NCBI RefSeq assembly: GCF_001194135.2
Contig: NC_068995.1
Span: 4,007,381 to 4,050,276 of the forward strand
Length of the DNA: 42,896 nucleotides
Source: Octopus bimaculoides
Taxonomy: Eukaryota
Direction: 5' to 3'
This document shows positions 24,509 to 42,664 of the stretch, piece by piece. How positions within the stretch are numbered: position 1 is the first letter of the stretch; each line of letters starts with the position of its first letter. The notes under the pieces are model-generated. The model was given only the letters and a program-made list of their open reading frames with translations. It ran no database searches and had not been told where the DNA came from. The position numbers and the translations under genes were made by a program.

Positions 24509-27500
24509 CATTATTTCTCTAATCACTTAGAGAGGGAATGTGAAGCCCATGGTCTTTTCAACACGTCCGGAATCTGTCGAAAGATCTTCGTATCCGTAGA
24601 CTGGACATCCTAATACGTACAAAAATCCTAAAAAAGACCTCAATCCTAATACGTACAAATATGTGACGTCTGTGAAAGACAGCCATGACCCAGATTGAGA
24701 TGTGAAAGTGAACGATTAATAGATACCGATTTCTCTTAAAATTATATAACCGTTCTTTGTACATTAATTTCCTGCTTGTCTTTCCAGTGGCACAACAAAG
24801 AGGGACTGGTTTTCTTCTCACCTCGACGGTTGAAACCGTTTCCAAAGGACATCATCTTCACCATAGATTATACTGAATCCATGAAAGGCGAGAAATTGTC
24901 CGAAGTGAAAAAAGCATTGTCCAGCATATTACGGATGACCTCCCCAAAAGACCGGTTCAAAATTCTTCTATACAACAAGAACGTGTACCAAGGGGCTTAT
25001 GGCTTGCTGCCTGTTAACGCCCACAACATTAAAATGGCTTTCGATTTATTTAAGAATACTATTCCGTATGATAGTAAGTAATCAGTAATTTGCGCTTACT
25101 TGTAGTAGTTGTAGTAGTAGTAGTAGTGTGAAGGCGCATGGATTAGTAGTTAGGATGTTGTACACGTGATTGCGAGATTGTGGTTTCGATCACCAGAGCA
25201 GGCATTGTCTTGTGTTCTTGAGCAAAGCACTTCATTTCACGTTGCTCTGCGATAATTTCCTCATCTGGCATATGGTACACGGTACACCTGTACAGGTAAT
25301 GTCGATTTGATGGTGGGTGGGGTGGAGTGTGTTACACAGACATTTGATCGCTCTAAACATATTGCAGAACACTCATACGCCGTCCAAACAACGAGCGAGT
25401 CCATAAGTAGTATTATGTAGCTGCTGTAGTTTTGTATTAATGGTGGTGAATCTCTTTTTGATTGTTGTTTCTGTTGTCGTTGATGGTGAGGTTTTCTCTG
25501 TTGTTGATTCATCCTAGATTTTGAACAAAAAGACAGAGACTCAAGATGATATAATCGTGGATATTATTATATTATCCCTTGATAATGTTTATGGACTGAG
25601 ATCCCCGCTTATAGACCGCTGATATTAAATAATGTGTTAAACACTTATGGTATGCAAATCAGTAGATTCAGTTCTGTGTAGCTACTTTATACAAGCAGTT
25701 TGGCTGCTTGTTTTTCTAGGATTGAGCAAGTGATGTAACGTACCACTGATGAGACCCCAATAAGTTACGAAAATCGACTAAGGTTGTTAATCACTTTTTC
25801 AATCTGCGGAGCAGTAGTTGCTATGCCGTGTTTGTATGTCTATTACGAAGGTTTACATATATACTATGTCTGTGAAAATTATACTATATCATCTAAATGA
25901 GGAATTTAAAACAACATCAAGTTGCCGGTGTTGTCGGCACGTTTGAAACGCAATAAGTCTAGCTGCTCACTTTTAAATCTCCTTTACGACTTGTTCCATC
26001 AAGGATGTCTTGGACTAAGCGACATCGACATGGATTTTCCCCAATATATATATTTTTTTTTTGCTTAGTATTTCTATGAAATTTTGTGTTCTTTATCTTA
26101 TTCTTCTGTTATTTCTAATTTTTATTCTGTAGCGAGTGACTTAAATTTGGCCATTGAAGAAAGTTTAAAACAGTTGAACAAATCTGATCCCAGCGAAAAA
26201 AGAGTCCGAGTTGTGTATTTCCTTACAGATGGCTGGCAGTCAATGAATAATATCAGAAGACACAAAATAACCAAATCGTTCCGTAAAGCTAACAAAGATT
26301 GCAAAGCTATATTCTTCAACGTTGCTTTACATTTGAAAGCTGACTACATCTTATTGAAGACCTTATCGAATCTGAGCGGAGGCAAAACTTTGAGAATTAC
26401 TGAGAAACAAAATATATCTAAGTCTATGGTAAATTTCTACAAAGAAATGAAGACGCCACTTTTAACTAATTTATCAACAGTTGGACCTTATCATAATACA
26501 TCATATTACGTTGGTTTAAAGGATTATTACAAAGGTTCTGAAAATATCTTGTATTTTAACAAAACTAATGTAAACTCTAGTGATGGTAGCACGTTATATG
26601 TCTACTCTGACGGCGCAAATGGTGCGGTCAAGTTCAAGAATACCATTAAAGATTCTCACATCGAAGATAATATTGGAGGGCTTAACAGTTTTGAGAGAAA
26701 GAATTTCATGGCAAAATATTTGGATTTTTTATTTATAAGAATGGTCATTGACCGAAAGTTGAAAGCACGCAGGGAAGAGGCAATCGACAAAGCAATGAGG
26801 GTAAGTTATAAAACCAAAAACACCATCAAATATCGTAAACTTTACGAATTCTGATCAAATAGTATCGGAAATGTTGCTATGGTAACAGAGTTAAAGTACG
26901 CAGAGTGAAGCTGTTTGGCACAGATTGACCGTCATCTCTGTTGCGCATGCACACCAAGGCATAACACTCTCACTCACTTCCGTTCTTTATAGGAGTGTTT
27001 GGAAGTAAAGTGTGTGAAGTGTGGTCGTCTCACCACACCACAGAGATTCCATCTATTACCACGGCAAAGAAAATCTATGTGTGCGCACACGTGTTTGTAT
27101 ATGTGTGTGTATGTATGTGTGTGTGAGTTTGTGTGTGCGTGTGTGCGTGCGTGTGTTTATATACGCTTGACTCGTGTTTGCGTTTCTGTTTGTCCCCACC
27201 GCCGTTTGGCAAACGGTGTTAGCTTGTTTACGTTCCAGTAACTAAGCGGCTCGGCCTAAGATGCCGATAAAGTAAGTACTGGACTTCAAAAGTAAGTACT
27301 GAAGGCGGGGGTCGGTTTGTTCGACAAAACTCTTCGAGGTGGTGGCTCAGCATGGCCGCAGTGCAAAGGCTGAAACCAGTAAAAGATAAATGTTGGAAGG
27401 TCATATCCGGTCAAATGTATATTTCTTGTAATGCTACATCTGTCTGAGAGGAGAGAGAGAGTGAGAGAGAGAGGTACCGACAAACAGACAGATAGATGTG

Positions 27501-29941
27501 GGGGAAGTGCAGATTTAAATGTGGTTCTATTTGCTGTTTTTCTATATTTCAGAATGGCTTTTTGACACCCTGGACTTATATGTCTGCACTGCCCAGCTCT
27601 TACAACGCTGTTCAAAATTTAGGTAAGAAAGCTTAAGTTTGGGTCAGGGGAGTAAGCCGATTACATTGGCCTCCAATACTCAACTGGTACTTATTTTATC
27701 CACCCCGAAAAGATGAAAGGTAGAGTCGACCTCAGTGGAATCTTAACTCAGAACTGTTTGGATTTTTAGGTCACCTCGTCTTTTCTTTCTTTGCATTCCT
27801 TTATGCTACAATGTCATTAGTTGCCAAACCTTGTTTAGCTCAAAAACGTTCAGAACAGGAAAAGAAAACAGTCCCTTTTGGTGGTTTGTAGATTACTATT
27901 TGTGGGCTTTTTAGTTTGTTTCTTTTCTTTTTTGTTTTTGGTTCCACTTTGTAAAACCATTATCATCAGATTCCTTGGGTTGTTCTCGTTACCCTTTTCG
28001 TCATCTATCTCTCTTTCTATCGATTGATCGATCTATTTGAAAAATATATATTTTTATATATATACGAAGGGGTGCTTTAAAGGTGCGAAAGACCTGGCTG
28101 GAGGCCCAAACTTCTGACTTCTTTTACAGGGCCTAGGAAAAACTGAAGGACTGATGCAATAAGTGTGAATTTGAAAAGGGAACATGTTNNNNNNNNNNNN
28201 NNNNNNNNNNNNNNNNNNNNNNNNNNNNNNNNNNNNNNNNNNNNNNNNNNNNNNNNNNNNNNNNNNNNNNNNNNNNNNNNNNNNNNNNNNNNNNNNNNNN
28301 NNNNNNNNNNNNNNNNNNNNNNNNNNNNNNNNNNNNNNNNNNNNNNNNNNNNNNNNNNNNNNNNNNNNNNNNNNNNNNNNNNNNNNNNNNNNNNNNNNNN
28401 NNNNNNNNNNNNNNNNNNNNNNNNNNNNNNNNNNNNNNNNNNNNNNNNNNNNNNNNNNNNNNNNNNNNNNNNNNNNNNNNNNNNNNNNNNNNNNNNNNNN
28501 NNNNNNNNNNNNNNNNNNNNNNNNNNNNNNNNNNNNNNNNNNNNNNNNNNNNNNNNNNNNNNNNNNNNNNNNNNNNNNNNNNNNNNNNNNNNNNNNNNNN
28601 NNNNNNNNNNNNNNNNNNNNNNNNNNNNNNNNNNNNNNNNNNNNNNNNNNNNNNNNNNNNNNNNNNNNNNNNNNNNNNNNNNNNNNNNNNNNNNNNNNNN
28701 NNNNNNNNNNNNNNNNNNNNNNNNNNNNNNNNNNNNNNNNNNNNNNNNNNNNNNNNNNNNNNNNNNNNNNNNNNNNNNNNNNNNNNNNNNNNNNNNNNNN
28801 NNNNNNNNNNNNNNNNNNNNNNNNNNNNNNNNNNNNNNNNNNNNNNNNNNNNNNNNNNNNNNNNNNTATATATATATATATGCATATGTATATAGCTCTA
28901 GATCTCTGTCCATGTTATAACCACCTTCACGTGAATGTTGTGTTCGAAATCAGGATACTGCATTATTTACTTTGAGAAGACCTCTCATATAAACTCGCGG
29001 TGCATAATGAAATTACAGCGTCCGTAGCAGACGATCCTTGTCTGTTAGCGATATAAATACGACTACTTTCATGCAGCACGACTTTTTCTGAGAGATCCTC
29101 TCAAAATAACTGACGCACGATTCTGTGCTCTAACACAAAATTCACGTTAAGGTGGATATAAAGATTGTCTTTTCATATTAATATTGATGCTACCGCTATT
29201 AACTGTTTTATGCATAAAAGTATTTATCTATCATATATATGTGTCTGTATGTGTGTCTGTATGCAGTGTATGTGTGTCGGCATGCACACTCATAACCTTA
29301 TATATTCACCAATTTGTTTGCTTTCATACTTCGAAGTCTCATTTTAAACCTTTATCCTTTTGAATTCTCCACCCATACCAATTACACTCACACAACACTA
29401 CAATCAAACCATCATCCAAATCTCAGGAGTCGGAGATCCTCATTTCACAGTTAGCATCCGTGGATTGAAAAGACCAGTTTGTTTTGATTTACAAGGAGAT
29501 GATGGCGACGTTATCAATTTGCTGGCAGACGACACTGCAAGTAAGTAAAACTAAGAACTCTCGTGATTTGCTTCAGTCTGTAACAATATGTATTTGTACG
29601 ATCCAAATCTTCTTCAGCAAACTTTCTATCTTCTTTTAAAATTTATTCCCGTTTAAACGTGGGTGTTCTGTTAAAACAAATTTACTGTTGTATTTACCAT
29701 AAGAGAAACTCTTAAATAGGCTTTCGGTGCAGAAAGCTCACTGCTTTGATTATATCGCTGACGGAGAGATAACTCTCCACCAACCCCAGCGCCGACAGCA
29801 CCAGATCAGGTGATTTCGATCTGCCTGTCTTTTGATCTACTAACTCAACTTCTCCTTCCATGATAATGTTTTCCAACCCTCTGTTCCTTCGAATATGGCC
29901 ACTTACAATACAACCACTCCAATATTTATCTATTTATTCAT

Positions 29942-29972
<31 letters not shown>

Positions 29973-30457
29973 TTTCTTCATTTATTTATGTTGTTGTCGT
30001 CGTTGTTTCAGAACTGTATGTCAATGCGAGAATTATTAAAGCCAGCATCAATTCTAAGAAAACCTATTTAGGAGAAATAAGCATCCTAAAACCAAATAAA
30101 ACGTGGGTGATCAGCCCAGACCAAGTCGAACGTACGATATCTGATCAACTGCAATGGAAAGATATCGATAAAATTAATATGACTAATGCAGTCAATGAGA
30201 CGTACGATGGTGATCACATTAACCAGATTGACAACACATCGATTAACGACATATCGATCAGATATTCTGGTTACAGAACTTTAACGTTGACGACTAGCAG
30301 CAAGAAAGGCAGAATCGAATTTTTATTACGACGTTCTCAAACTAAACATCAACCAATTGAAATAAAGTATTTAAATTTCTATCTGACCGATTCTACTGGA
30401 CTGAGTGGCTCCGTTTACGGATTGATTGGTAAGTAGACATATATTACATATTTTATC

Positions 30458-30504
<47 letters not shown>

Positions 30505-30780
30505 CATAATAATAATAATAATAATAATAGTAATAACATTACTAATAACAACAACAACAAGAATGATAATCTTTTCAACTAAATGTAGAAGGCCTTAAAT
30601 TTGGGGGAAGGTCCAGTCGATTATATCAACCCCAGTGTTTCACTGGTACTTAATCGATCGAGCACGAAAGTACGAAAGGCAAAGTCGACGTCGTCGGAAT
30701 CTGAACTTTGAACGTGAAGACGGACTAAATGCTGCTAAGCATCTTACCCGGCATGCTATCGATTCTGCCTGGTCATTGCC

Positions 30781-30843
<63 letters not shown>

Positions 30844-31213
30844 CTGTGAAAACAACATCCAGTCATGAATCTATTTCTGAAGTATAAAAATATATTTATT
30901 TTTCAAAAGTGATATATAATATCTGTGTTTATTAACTCTTTCTCTCTAATTTTCAACAGGTCAGTTTATCAGTTGGAAAGGAAATATTACAAAGCTCTAC
31001 ATGCAACCGAATGGAAAAATCCAGTCTTGGATCAAGTTAGAAAACGAAAGACAGAATGGAGGTCGAAACTTTACAGCTGTTTTAACACACAATCGCCGAT
31101 CAATGTATTCGCATCAGCAATGTTGGACAGTTTGGAAAGAAGGTAAAGATTTCATTAAAGGAAAATATGAAGATTACTTAATACACGGACTACATTCTAA
31201 GCCATCATCGTAA
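6852..31213 (+). CDS. ITIH: Complete spliced gene model: secreted ITIH-like protein (signal peptide-VIT-vWA-GDPH-ITI_HC_C), 11 coding exons, 853 aa. Join: 6852-6917, 9892-10052, 19534-19647, 22452-22708, 23893-24047, 24788-25073, 26133-26800, 27553-27622, 29427-29540, 30012-30428, 30960-31213
   Basis: Manual splicing gives GT-AG at all ten introns with phases 0,2,2,1,0,1,0,1,1,1, all matching; total 2562 nt = 854 codons including stop. ITIH-family motifs occur in the expected order: [91 protein letters not shown]. The symbol is family-level only; orthology to a numbered vertebrate ITIH cannot be assigned. Confidence 0.9.
7417..7470 (+). mobile_element. SINE-like family A 3' end after a gap, followed by an (AAC)n tail
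   Basis: gctaaggatttaacccggtttgctaacgtttctgccag..cgcctt matches the 3' end of 10261-10434. Confidence 0.55.
9595..9775 (+). mobile_element. Penelope-like element terminal (pLTR-type) fragment carrying a hammerhead motif; boundaries approximate
   Basis: Shares motifs (ttttttt.ctccgt, cc.gagcgtc..ctaata, gtcctcg..ttgtt) and the hammerhead with the inverted copy at 13630-13830. PLE assignment is inferred from the minimal hammerhead; no RT or GIY-YIG coding sequence seen. Confidence 0.5.
9647..9683 (+). ncRNA. Minimal hammerhead ribozyme motif, decayed (core A6 to U; ACGU to AAGU)
   Basis: UCUUU-CUGUUGA-A-GAGC(GUA)GCUC-GAA-AAGU-C-AAAGA. Same architecture and homologous flanks as the 13732 copy. 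Confidence 0.65.
9892..10052 (+). CDS. ITIH: ITIH-like exon 2: VIT domain N-terminal part ([25 protein letters not shown]...[11 protein letters not shown])
   Basis: Acceptor tgtattttcag, donor TT|gtaagt. Matches the VIT pattern I.YRFA.T.V...N......F...LP....I.N. Confidence 0.9.
10261..10434 (+). mobile_element. SINE-like family A copy (aagtcga..cccagt..actggtactta..gaaaggatgaaa..aagtcgacct..ggaatttgaactcagaac..gccagctcgccgcctt)
   Basis: Present in at least six diverged copies in this window; some end in (AAT)n or (AAC)n tails. Confidence 0.8.
12742..12947 (-). mobile_element. SINE-like family A copy, inverted relative to 10261
   Basis: Reverse complement aligns by eye with 10261-10434 along its length; truncated by a gap. 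Confidence 0.8.
13630..13830 (-). mobile_element. Penelope-like element terminal (pLTR-type) fragment carrying a hammerhead motif; boundaries approximate
   Basis: Homologous to 9595-9775 in the opposite orientation; contains the intact hammerhead motif. Confidence 0.5.
13732..13766 (-). ncRNA. Minimal type-I hammerhead ribozyme motif, apparently intact, PLE-type
   Basis: Minus strand reads GUUU-CUGAAGA-A-GAGC(GUU)GCUC-GAA-ACGU-U-AAAC: stem I 4 bp, full catalytic core, stem II 4 bp, palindromic ACGU in place of stem III, NUH cleavage triplet. Activity untested. Confidence 0.75.
14569..14858 (-). mobile_element. tRNA-derived SINE family B copy with duplicated 3' segment
   Basis: gcttctttcagtttccgt..accaaatccact occurs twice (about 14574 and 14701); head is homologous to 21702-21864. 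Confidence 0.7.
16437..16505. repeat. (TCTA)n microsatellite
   Basis: Direct inspection. Confidence 0.97.
17300..17837 (-). mobile_element. Degenerate mariner element, 5' TIR plus N-terminal transposase
   Basis: Minus-strand end TA-CGTGGTCTGATCAATAAGTATCCG; translation EQRICIK..KL...[20 protein letters not shown]....DERSGRPAT...[17 protein letters not shown] is the mariner HTH region, with stops and frameshifts. Confidence 0.85.
19534..19647 (+). CDS. ITIH: ITIH-like exon 3: VIT middle ([21 protein letters not shown]...EDRS)
   Basis: Acceptor atttattttacag, donor CT|gtgagt, phase 2/2. [10 protein letters not shown] matches the VIT motif I.G..Y...V.EK. Too short for the ORF track. Confidence 0.85.
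21702..21864 (-). mobile_element. tRNA-derived SINE family B copy
   Basis: Minus strand: GGCGTGGCTGTGTGG (A-box-like) ...GGTTCAGTCCC (B-box-like) ...gaaactgaaagaaacccgtc; homologous to 14569-14858. Confidence 0.75.
22452..22708 (+). CDS. ITIH: ITIH-like exon 4: VIT C-terminal part and start of hybrid region ([31 protein letters not shown]...)
   Basis: Acceptor ttctccttcag, donor A|gtgaga. F.V.V..AA.SK..F.LTY..LL.R is the VIT C-terminal signature. Confidence 0.9.
22859..23746 (-). mobile_element. 5'-truncated non-LTR retrotransposon 3' end, R4/Dong-type, interrupted by gap 23177-23561
   Basis: [23 protein letters not shown]...[18 protein letters not shown] (CCHC knuckle) and terminal [17 protein letters not shown] followed by about 190 nt of 3' UTR; these motifs are typical of R4/Dong-clade ORF ends. 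Confidence 0.8.
23747..23860. repeat. (ATT)n followed by (GTT)n microsatellite flanking the LINE fragment
   Basis: Direct inspection; the partner (ATT)n is at 22812-22857. Confidence 0.97.
23893..24047 (+). CDS. ITIH: ITIH-like exon 5 ([24 protein letters not shown]...[19 protein letters not shown])
   Basis: Acceptor tatattttttag, donor TTG|gtaagt. Phase 1/0 bridges exons 4 and 6 exactly; H.S(Y/F)....F...Y....G resembles the ITIH pre-vWA segment. Confidence 0.85.
24145..24440. mobile_element. Composite of SINE fragments: family C head (+) and a SINE 3' end in reverse orientation at about 24385-24440
   Basis: Head motifs shared with 25130; ggcactcggttacgacgacgagggttccagttgatccg is reverse-complementary to the gatc..caactggaa motif seen at 41480-41690 and 42665-42850. 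Confidence 0.5.
24788..25073 (+). CDS. ITIH: ITIH-like exon 6: vWA N-terminal part with MIDAS-like DYTES
   Basis: Acceptor gtctttccag, donor A|gtaagt. [40 protein letters not shown]....DRFKILLY matches ITIH FFAP..L...PK.V.FVID.SGSM.G.K....K.AL..IL....D.F. Confidence 0.92.
25130..25400 (+). mobile_element. tRNA-derived SINE (family C), degenerate
   Basis: ggcgcatggattagtagttagg (A-box-like) ...ggtttcgatcacc (B-box-like) ...gtgttcttgagcaaagcacttcatttcacgttgctc; the same head is at about 24150-24270. Confidence 0.6.
26133..26800 (+). CDS. ITIH: ITIH-like exon 7 (668 nt): rest of vWA plus hybrid region
   Basis: Acceptor tttattctgtag, donor AGG|gtaagt. Contains [42 protein letters not shown] and AKYLDFLFI (ITIH RLWAYLTI equivalent). 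Confidence 0.92.
27190..27392 (+). mobile_element. SINE-like repeat (family D), degenerate
   Basis: ggtgttagcttgtttacgt..taactaagcggctcggc..gataaagtaagtac..tttgttcgac..cagcatggccgcagt..ctgaaaccagtaaaagataaa; a short inverted remnant is at about 31420-31475. Recognised as a recurrent octopus-type repeat by pattern only. Confidence 0.5.
27553..27622 (+). CDS. ITIH: ITIH-like exon 8 ([23 protein letters not shown])
   Basis: Acceptor tctatatttcag, donor G|gtaaga. GFLTPWTYM corresponds to ITIH Y.FVTPLTSM; phase 0/1 fits both neighbours. Not in the ORF track. Confidence 0.85.
27638..27753 (+). mobile_element. SINE-like family A partial copy, about 15 nt downstream of the exon 8 donor
   Basis: Same core: actggtacttattttatc..cccgaaaagatgaaagg..gtcgacctcagtggaatcttaactcagaac. 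Confidence 0.75.
28063..28188 (+). mobile_element. Internally deleted mariner-derived element running into an assembly gap
   Basis: Starts TA-CGAAGGGGTGC (mariner-like TIR) and continues directly into sequence encoding a decayed mariner C-terminus (KL...NKC.NLKREHV, compare RW.KC..L.G.YVE). Confidence 0.5.
29427..29540 (+). CDS. ITIH: ITIH-like exon 9: GDPHF motif and start of ITI_HC_C ([35 protein letters not shown])
   Basis: GDPHF.V......CF...G..G.V.NL..D is the start of the ITIH C-terminal domain; donor A|gtaagt. The acceptor (ccaaatctcag) is atypical, see findings. Confidence 0.88.
30012..30428 (+). CDS. ITIH: ITIH-like exon 10: ITI_HC_C domain (LYVNARII...KTYLGEISI...[20 protein letters not shown])
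   Basis: Acceptor gttgtttcag, donor G|gtaagt. VN.....KTY.G.I.I and L.FY..DS...S..V.GL.G motifs are present. Confidence 0.9.
30586..30782 (+). mobile_element. SINE-like family A copy with (TAA)n tail in intron 10
   Basis: Same core motifs; followed by (AAT)n at about 30783-30842. Confidence 0.75.
30960..31213 (+). CDS. ITIH: ITIH-like exon 11, terminal coding exon (QFISWKG...[32 protein letters not shown])
   Basis: Acceptor ctaattttcaacag. Joins to give GLIGQF; CW.V...G..FI.G.Y.DY.I is the ITIH C-terminal motif; TAA at 31211-31213. Confidence 0.9.
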
Positions 31214-32950: not shown

Positions 32951-33431
32951 ATATTAAGCTCAAATACTTGCAGCAGAAAATTTTGTAGTCTTTCTGACCA
33001 AAAGATTAATTCTTCATTACTTCGTTTTATTTAATTATGGGGGTATACCTCAGTGTGCTGAAGGCTACAGTCACCGTAGCCGATAACCAAATTGGTTCCA
33101 CTTTTCATTGAACTATGAGAAAAGGATCATCTCCTAAACTTGTATCACAGACTGGCATTAAATCTAAAACAAAACGTTGATCTTTTTAATGAGTTATGTT
33201 CCCTTTCTTGCATGCATATGTATATATGTTAATATGTGAACATAGAATCGTACAAATATATTCTTCTGGTTATATGTTTAAAATTATGCACTAATAGAGA
33301 AAAAAATGCCGGTAGTATGATTTTTTTTCTTCTGAATCTAGGTAAGATCAACTGTGTATGTATGCATGCATGATAAACAATATATGATATATAATATATC
33401 ATATATAATATATATATATAGACACACACAC

Positions 33432-39361: not shown

Positions 39362-39490
39362 CCATTTCGGACACGTTTACGTTTGAGTTTAAAATCCGCC
39401 GAAGTCGACTTTAACTTACATCGTTTAAGTGTTGATAAATTAAGTACCAGTTGCGCACTGGGGGCCATGTAATAAACTGACCGCTATTCC
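39362..39490 (-). mobile_element. SINE-like family A partial copy
   Basis: Reverse complement shows ccccagtgcgcaactggtacttaatttatc..gttaaagtcgacttcggcggattttaaactc. Confidence 0.65.
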
Positions 39491-41690: not shown

Positions 41691-41842
41691 TGACAAAGAT
41701 GGACATTTCTTCTCACAGACACAATCAATCCTAAGGGTTTTCACAAAGTTACCTACAATTCATTTTCATGAACATCTTGGACAATCATGGACAATTGTCT
41801 TTATTTCTACTCTCATCCGGGTGTGCATACACACACATAGTC

Positions 41843-41988
41843 GTCTTCTTCTTCTTCTTCTTCTTCTTCTTCTTCTTCTTCTTCTTCTTCTTCTTCTTCT
41901 TCTTCTTCTTCTTCTTCTTCTTCATCATCATCATCATCATCATCATCATCTTCATCATCATCACCATCATCATCACCATCATCACCAC

Positions 41989-42029
<41 letters not shown>

Positions 42030-42057
42030 CCATCGTCATCATCATCATCATCATCAT
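41843..42057. repeat. (TTC)n then (CAT)n microsatellite
   Basis: Direct inspection; explains the poly-L/H, poly-F/I and poly-M/K ORFs. Confidence 0.97.
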
Positions 42058-42664
42058 AGTTGTTATAAACGTTGCACAGTATACAATATTGTGAGGTTGT
42101 TGATTAAAAATAATATTGTATCTACCGGGGGGGGGGACTGTTTGTCAAATCCCAACAGGGACCTTTCTTCATATCTCCGGACGGGTCAGCCTGAGTAGAA
42201 CATTTTTGGTTCTCCTTCACGAGAGAACGAAGCATCTTAGGCTTCTTGTGGTTTTCAACGAATTTTAGCATCCAGTCGTTAGTTGTTTCAAGATATTTAG
42301 CTCGTCTAGTGTAATGATTTGGTAAGAAATTTCAAATTGGAGGAAGCCCCGAACTTCTTAGGCTCTGGAGAAGTAACGACTTTTGACACATGGCATTCTT
42401 AAAGAAAGAAACAGGAGAACAAGCTTTACAAACTAACTCAATCAAGTGTAACTTTGATAAAACAGCAGTATCACCTTTGTGTAGACTAAGGGAAAAATCA
42501 TGTGAGATAGGCATATAATTAGTGGATGCTCAAAACTAGCTCAAAAGGAGTCCAAAAAACCATCATGACAAAGTAACAGCGTGAATACAATGGAGAATAT
42601 GCAAGAAATAAGGGCAAGAATGTTCCAACAAGAAGCATGAGACCTAACCTTTGCCATTTGGAAG

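Follow-up and report, generated by a model that had tools for sequence, protein, structure and literature searches.

In the public annotation, a 42,896-nt stretch of the Octopus bimaculoides genome (contig NC_068995.1, positions 4,007,381 to 4,050,276; referred to here in its entirety as the window) carries two genes: one named "ITIH5," which encodes a 596-aa protein with VIT and VWA domains (P0002), and LOC106882729, which is labeled "uncharacterized" and encodes 167 aa with a Pfam ITI_HC_C domain (P0001; chromosome CM046615.1 of assembly GCA_001194135.2). Our analysis indicates that the two are most likely a single ITIH-like gene and that the exon encoding its Gly-Asp-Pro-His (GDPH) motif lies between them, outside either coding sequence. 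A protein built from the exons around the GDPH site matched only LOC106882729. The window is AT-rich eukaryotic DNA with 13 runs of N totaling 5,954 nt, such as those at 7825-8707, 14861-15787, and 28189-28866. The public sequence fetched for window positions 20179-41213 was identical to the window and carried the same five N runs, which are thus gaps of the public assembly.

The first eight exons, on the plus strand like all those described here, were placed by mapping P0002 to the window. Exon 1 (6852..6917), to which P0002 mapped exactly and which ends at a GT donor, contains the start codon and encodes a hydrophobic N terminus that by inspection is a likely signal peptide. The VIT domain begins in exon 2 (9892..10052, also supported by Pfam), continues through exon 3 (19534..19647), and ends in exon 4 (22452..22708); exon 5 (23893..24047) encodes the linker between VIT and VWA. 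Exon 6 (24788..25073) opens the VWA domain and includes a D-Y-T-E-S sequence of the metal ion-dependent adhesion site (MIDAS) type at 24866-24880, and exon 7 (26133..26800) encodes the remainder of VWA followed by a helical region, both assignments agreeing with Pfam. Exon 8 (27553..27622) ends with ...VQNL plus one G at the donor TTA G/GTAAGA. The annotated P0002 protein runs past this donor: its C terminus reads ...VQNLGKKA, of which the last four residues are intron read-through to a stop at 27634-27636.

The remaining three exons are only partly annotated. Exon 9, the GDPH exon (29427..29540, 114 nt), is bounded by a cag acceptor and a GTAAGT donor and is in no annotated coding sequence. 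Exon 10 (30012..30428) encodes the body of the C-terminal ITI_HC_C, VWD-like domain; P0001 begins at an internal Met at position 30179, so that the first 167 nt of this exon are also outside every annotated coding sequence. Exon 11 (30960..31213) encodes the end of the domain with a conserved C-W and terminates with a TAA stop at 31211-31213. Joining the 11 exons (6852-31213), all with GT-AG boundaries, yielded a continuous 853-aa open reading frame. The exon 8 donor is in phase 1 and exon 9 needs one carried-over base, so the phases match. An open reading frame piece at 28976-29053 was tried as the exon preceding the GDPH exon and was dropped, as it had no GT donor or AG acceptor of compatible phase; in the window, exon 8 is the true preceding exon, and its product matches the FVTPLTSMVV motif of the family.

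The sequence at 29427-29446, immediately 3′ of the cag acceptor, is gagtcggagatcctcatttc. With the G carried over from exon 8, the start of exon 9 encodes G-V-G-D-P-H-F followed by T-V, and the codons at the predicted scissile bond are 29435-29437 for Asp (D596) and 29438-29440 for Pro (P597), leaving 257 residues past the cut. An earlier note, made from the sequence alone, had placed the motif at 29427-29446, with the predicted cleavage between D596 and P597 and a 257-aa C-terminal piece, and the 11-exon join reproduces these figures exactly. By an estimate from typical residue frequencies, about 0.003 GDPH occurrences would be expected by chance in a protein of this length.

The earlier note had also assigned the protein to the ITIH family, and Pfam detected all three domains of such a protein in the 853-aa sequence: VIT (PF08487) at residues 28-139 (32.9 bits; cutoff, 26.5), VWA (PF00092) at residues 272-412 (41.1 bits; cutoff, 23.8), and ITI_HC_C (PF06668) at residues 709-827 (38.3 bits; cutoff, 27). 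A locally built C-terminal profile scored 234 bits across residues 575-849. The architecture thus consists of a likely secretion signal, VIT, VWA, a short disordered linker, and a C-terminal domain of ~257 residues that opens with G-D-P-H. The protein has a hydrophobic N terminus (by inspection), 16 N-x-S/T sequons, and three cysteines only: C403 in VWA, and C611 and C824, which both follow the cut. In the MIDAS of the VWA domain, Asp and Ser are invariant, and two positions (within 24866-24880 and ~26133-26145) show conservative swaps, S to T and T to S, that the three octopod orthologs have in common: their pattern is D-x-T-x-S...S...D, versus D-x-S-x-S...T...D in the other relatives of the alignment (41 to 42 of 45).

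To place the motif within the family, we aligned the protein with its relatives. The main alignment comprised 34 sequences selected for carrying DPH followed by F or V. The octopus GDPHF falls in the same column as the vertebrate heavy-chain D/PHF site, so the motif does occupy the homologous cleavage position, as had been proposed; coelacanth H2, an axolotl H3-like protein, and hagfish H1 share this Asp-Pro column. At every highly conserved position (≥85%) of the alignment (DPHF, C-F, L, D, T, L, S, G, G, and C-W), the octopus protein has the consensus residue, and the conserved residues downstream of GDPHF keep matching spacing. C611 corresponds to the invariant C-F position and C824 to the C-W position, which is conserved in 94% of the aligned set.

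At the cleavage column of a broader alignment of 46 sequences (45 distinct, P0053 having been entered twice), D and H were each present in 28 of the 45 and P in 43. About 38% of these aligned ITIH-like relatives therefore lack the Asp and His, while nearly all retain the Pro, which suggests that cleavable and noncleavable classes both exist. Among these relatives, the noncleavable class would be much like ITIH4 in vertebrates. By its predicted residues, the octopus gene belongs to the cleavable class.

The motif is widespread. Of the 150 top-ranking relatives of P0002, nearly all those with a strong C-terminal domain have D-P-H-F at the same place. DPHF is found in octopod paralogs, namely, two from Argonauta, O. 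bimaculoides XP_014789100.1 (850 aa, ...FGDPHFLV...), and the counterparts from O. sinensis and O. vulgaris; in other molluscs (Ruditapes, Pecten, Mytilus, Sinanodonta, Patella, Haliotis, and Lottia); in other invertebrates (Lingula, Ptychodera, Antedon, Acanthaster, Branchiostoma, and Penaeus); and in vertebrate H1, H2, H3, H5, and H6, from hagfish to birds. Because it occurs across mollusc, brachiopod, hemichordate, echinoderm, amphioxus, shrimp, and vertebrate members, the Asp-Pro site is ancestral in Bilateria, and the GDPH motif is an ancestral feature of the family, not a peculiarity of the octopus gene. The earlier note drew attention to retention of the site in an invertebrate protein. 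Such retention does not set this protein apart: the cleavage site is already visible in public annotations of ITIH-like proteins across numerous invertebrate phyla, and the O. bimaculoides paralog XP_014789100.1 has it as well.

Two observations concern the paralogs. A second ITIH-like gene with GDPHF (P0048/P0157) lies on the same O. bimaculoides chromosome, CM046615.1, outside the window; within the window, no second ITIH-like copy was found. In Argonauta, the two paralogs (P0004 and P0024) share contig BAAFZT010000042.1, and their accession numbers differ by 23, an arrangement suggestive of an old linked duplication.

We then compared the locus with those of two other octopods. In O. sinensis (locus L002), the orthologs of exons 3 to 11 are all intact. 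Across exons 9 to 11, the two Octopus species differ by 19 synonymous and 23 nonsynonymous changes, giving a ratio of nonsynonymous to synonymous substitution rates (dN/dS) of 0.30 (Fisher P = 2.5e-4), compared with 0.45 for exons 3 to 8. These exons are ~95% identical between the species, whereas the flanking introns are ~89% identical (divergence of ~5% versus ~11%); exon 9 alone encodes protein that is 95% identical, with a dN/dS of 0.18. The C-terminal exons are under purifying selection. In Argonauta hians, an exhaustive HMMER search with P0002 recovered a direct ortholog (P0004; GAB1605209.1) of 883 aa and 62% identity, encoded as a single open reading frame from VIT through ITI_HC_C with the GDPH motif included; the phases of Argonauta exons 8 and 9 agree with those in the window. 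Both comparisons support joining the two annotated genes. The octopod gene groups at >60% identity only with octopod sequences, all others being ≤30% identical, and the octopus protein is 22 to 26% identical to other molluscan ITIH family members.

These comparisons bear on the idea that GDPH is a chance occurrence or the artifact of an arbitrary exon join. Such a reading could point to the absence of exon 9 from any annotated coding sequence and to the fact that the earlier note was made without tools. The exon nevertheless has a canonical acceptor and donor with matching phases, its motif aligns with the family cleavage site and is followed by conserved residues, and it is conserved in two other octopod genomes. 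The spliced open reading frame, the O. sinensis exons, the family alignment, and the Argonauta exons together refute a chance or artifactual origin, to which we assign a negligible probability.

The residue number of the scissile Asp is less secure than its position. Argonauta hians has a 63-nt exon, exon 8b (DSPQNILDDEIEIPGRGFTGS), at 33228-33290 of its locus (L003), between exons 8 and 9. O. sinensis has a homologous exon 8b of 61 nt (L002, 23433-23493), the conserved frame of which reads LLENILDVEIEIPGRGFTGS. Exon 8b was looked for throughout the O. bimaculoides window and was not found. By synteny its expected position is ~28791-28851, which falls inside the assembly gap at 28189-28866, a run of N within the intron that precedes the GDPH exon; an O. 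bimaculoides exon 8b of ~63 nt is therefore probably hidden in this gap. It would add ~21 residues before the motif and probably place the real Asp near position 617. The D596 numbering of the earlier note is thus phase-correct for the join that it used and is probably ~21 too low.

Exon 8b is also relevant to a different reading of the locus, in which Octopus no longer yields a full-length protein: only the VIT-VWA half, or a protein with a frame-shifted tail, would be made, and the GDPH and ITI_HC_C exons would be an untranslated or separately used remnant. The NCBI models have this form, with two genes in O. bimaculoides (596 and 167 aa) and, in O. sinensis, a 510-aa protein (P0003) in which exon 8b is included at 61 nt and the GDPH exon is read out of frame. 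The difference in length between the O. sinensis and Argonauta exons (61 versus 63 nt) fits this reading, as does the lack of an Octopus protein containing the GDPH exon in the collections searched. However, when exon 8b is skipped in O. sinensis, the frame is restored (...VQNLGVGDPHF...), the 2-nt shortfall could be an assembly error, and the split in O. bimaculoides coincides with the assembly gap. In addition, exons 9 to 11 retain all their splice sites and reading frames in both Octopus species, constraint is stronger on the C-terminal exons than on the N-terminal ones, every family residue conserved at ≥85% is retained, and the Argonauta open reading frame is continuous. We therefore regard loss of the full-length protein as improbable.

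Structure predictions were made for two octopod relatives. The AlphaFold2 model of the Argonauta ortholog P0004 had a mean predicted local distance difference test (pLDDT) score of 80.4, with values of 82 to 93 in the C-terminal domain. In this model, D621-P622 (the counterpart Asp-Pro) lies in a turn between strands 616-619 and 623-626, and the preceding 25 residues are disordered. The N-terminal 590 residues matched the crystal structure of human heavy chain 1 (HC1; 6FPY) with a template modeling (TM) score of 0.72 (E = 1e-36). Fold searches with full-length P0004 returned matches to VIT/VWA only, and likeness to VWD emerged solely with a C-terminal-only model. That model, of the O. bimaculoides paralog fragment P0157, had a pLDDT of 82.6, with strands 41-43 and 48-51 flanking D46-P47; the strand order is alike in the P0004 and P0157 C-terminal models. 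In Foldseek searches with it, the top 24 PDB matches were all VWD assemblies (MUC2, MUC5AC, MUC5B, and FCGBP D10), with a probability of 1.00, E values of 7e-5 to 2.4e-2 (≤1.2e-4 for the best five), and ~150 to 173 aligned columns. At the sequence level, the 853-aa protein gave no match to Pfam VWD (PF00094) at an E value of ≤0.01, and a PDB sequence search with its C-terminal 284 residues gave no match. As modeled, then, the resemblance of the octopus C-terminal domain to VWD lies in fold only. The models agree with a published remark that an unannotated VWD-like sandwich in human ITIH3, -5, and -6 has GDPH between its first and second strands (PMC10880436). Separately, chain I of PDB entry 9c4f ("Infectious B19V capsid," 189 residues) matched part of the ortholog model very well, with a TM score of 0.90 on the target and 24% identity; presumably this chain is an ITIH-type domain from the host in complex with the capsid.

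The closest biochemical parallels are vertebrate heavy chains HC1 to HC3 (ITIH1 to -3), which have a signal, VIT, VWA, a linker, D-P-H-F, and a C-terminal propeptide domain in the same order as the octopus protein (the signal there being a likely one); the octopus protein also contains the FVTPLTSMVV-like motif. Identity is only ~20 to 25%, and the MIDAS differs by the Ser/Thr swaps. The D-P-H-F consensus at the boundary between heavy chain and propeptide is present in HC1 to HC3, HC5, and HC6. Bikunin chondroitin sulfate as the acceptor, TSG-6 as the transferase, and hyaluronan as the final acceptor are not known to occur outside vertebrates or chordates. GenBank labels relatives of both octopus halves "ITIH5(-like)," a name that reflects automatic best-hit transfer and not orthology; vertebrate ITIH5 and ITIH6 do resemble the octopus protein in having G-D-P-H within what is predicted to be a VWD-like sandwich (PMC10880436). 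ITIH-like proteins annotated in invertebrates, among them XP_014789100.1, GAB1605209.1, and GAB1605232.1 and those of clam, scallop, mussel, limpet, abalone, Lingula, Ptychodera, Antedon, Acanthaster, Branchiostoma, and Penaeus, have the full VIT-VWA-DPHF-ITI_HC_C arrangement of the octopus protein; unlike them, the octopus locus is mis-split and its GDPH exon is unannotated.

A second parallel is with the GDPH-cleaving VWD domains of MUC2, MUC5AC, FCGBP, and the RGMs, which, like the octopod models, are predicted or known to place GDPH between strands 1 and 2 of a beta-sandwich. Their self-cleavage depends on Asp and His (PMC10880436, PMC8267560), and by analogy the same chemistry may apply to the octopus protein. 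In contrast to these proteins, it has no Pfam VWD match, no C8 or TIL modules, and no disulfide bridging the fragments. Because no disulfide would hold the two fragments together, cleavage in octopus should release the propeptide and not leave a nicked domain.

The background given in the earlier note (D/P cleavage, the Asp ester to bikunin chondroitin sulfate, and GDPH autocleavage in mucins and RGMs) is borne out by the literature (PMC8267560, PMC10880436, PMC7170535). In a VWD domain, both the Asp and the His of GDPH are required for self-cleavage (PMC10880436). Cleavage of ITIH3 is described as autocatalytic, occurring under the low-pH conditions of the late secretory pathway, and its Asp is esterified to C-6 of N-acetylgalactosamine in chondroitin sulfate (PMC8267560 and its references 13, 19-22, and 24). 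On this model, the octopus protein would cut itself in the way that vertebrate heavy chains and VWD domains do: in the secretory pathway, the Asp side chain would attack its own Asp-Pro bond with the assistance of His. The products would be an N-terminal heavy chain of ~575 to 600 residues ending in Asp and a 257-residue C-terminal propeptide, which would leave, as in heavy chains and unlike in mucins, since no cysteine bridges the cut. The C-terminal Asp, as a transient anhydride, would then be either esterified to a sugar hydroxyl, most plausibly of chondroitin sulfate on another core protein, or hydrolysed by water. The sequence and the predicted fold that such cleavage requires are present. 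By analogy with the vertebrate proteins, we consider self-cleavage quite likely. An ester between the octopus C-terminal Asp and a glycan, such as the covalent attachment to a cephalopod glycosaminoglycan that the earlier note put forward, is purely inferred; as a reasonable extrapolation it is plausible but somewhat less likely than not.

The other outcome is that the site is cleaved solely for maturation or stabilization, the Asp anhydride meeting water and the propeptide being shed or held noncovalently, with nothing cross-linked. To our knowledge, bikunin, the acceptor, and TSG-6, the transferase, are vertebrate inventions, and we counted this in its favor. There is precedent in FCGBP, where every GDPH site is cut and the C-terminal Asp so created was found hydrolysed, without any detected covalent partner (PMC8267560), and cleavage itself stabilizes a VWD domain against proteases (PMC10880436). 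On the other hand, the documented fate of the Asp within the ITIH family is an ester to chondroitin sulfate (PMC8267560, PMC7170535); in the octopus protein, unlike in VWD proteins, there is no disulfide across the cut, so that the exposed Asp would leave the sandwich; and DPHF is kept together with the entire propeptide domain in phyla without bikunin, which suggests a function beyond folding. Hydrolysis as the sole fate is a real possibility against which we lean.

Taken as a whole, the data are best explained by a misannotated, divergent, octopod-specific ITIH-family gene with a canonical cleavage-site exon, the product of which would cleave itself and then form an ester or be hydrolysed; we think this account probable. 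Several points weigh against it. The octopus protein is very divergent, with only 33 to 41 bits per Pfam domain. The joining of the two halves in Octopus is so far a prediction from genomic sequence, the annotations of O. bimaculoides and O. sinensis both break at the exon 8/9 junction, and no Octopus predicted protein with the GDPH exon was found in a 5.8-billion-sequence collection; negatives from this word-indexed protein search are weak, because it missed the Argonauta ortholog twice. Exon 8b was not seen in the window, and the 61-nt O. sinensis version, if included, shifts the GDPH exon out of frame. The structures were predicted for the Argonauta ortholog and the O. bimaculoides paralog and not for the window's own protein. 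As FCGBP shows, GDPH cleavage can end as hydrolysis without a cross-link (PMC8267560), and literature searches on invertebrate and cephalopod ITIH biochemistry gave passing mentions only, with no cleavage or glycan-adduct test in any invertebrate found.

Elsewhere in the window, an interspersed repeat of ~170 to 230 nt, probably a short interspersed nuclear element, occurs in introns and in the downstream region in copies that are 71 to 75% identical (10266-10434, plus strand; 12755-12938, minus; 27683-27754, plus; 30561-30790, plus; and 39386-39479, minus). The introns are rich in microsatellites and low-complexity runs, e.g., at ~3650-4260 and ~41800-42100. No tRNA and no Rfam family were found in the window, and literature searches gave no match for LOC106882729 or DPHFII.

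The practical outcome of this work is an annotation correction: two GenBank genes are most likely one, neither model contains the cleavage-site exon, and one further small exon is probably hidden in the assembly gap. The broader question concerns the whole family, namely, to what the heavy-chain-like proteins with an intact Asp-Pro site become attached in animals without bikunin, TSG-6, and hyaluronan. The window adds little new leverage on this question, because it can already be posed with the dozens of invertebrate proteins that are annotated, among them a better-annotated paralog from the same species. One answer would be that the heavy chains of octopods, and with them those of many other invertebrates, undergo self-cleavage at GD/PH, after which the activated Asp is ester-linked to a glycan, chondroitin sulfate or a different one, of a core protein other than bikunin; we hold this to be rather unlikely. 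If it is true, protein-glycosaminoglycan ester cross-linking would be an ancestral bilaterian matrix mechanism that predates bikunin, TSG-6, and hyaluronan.

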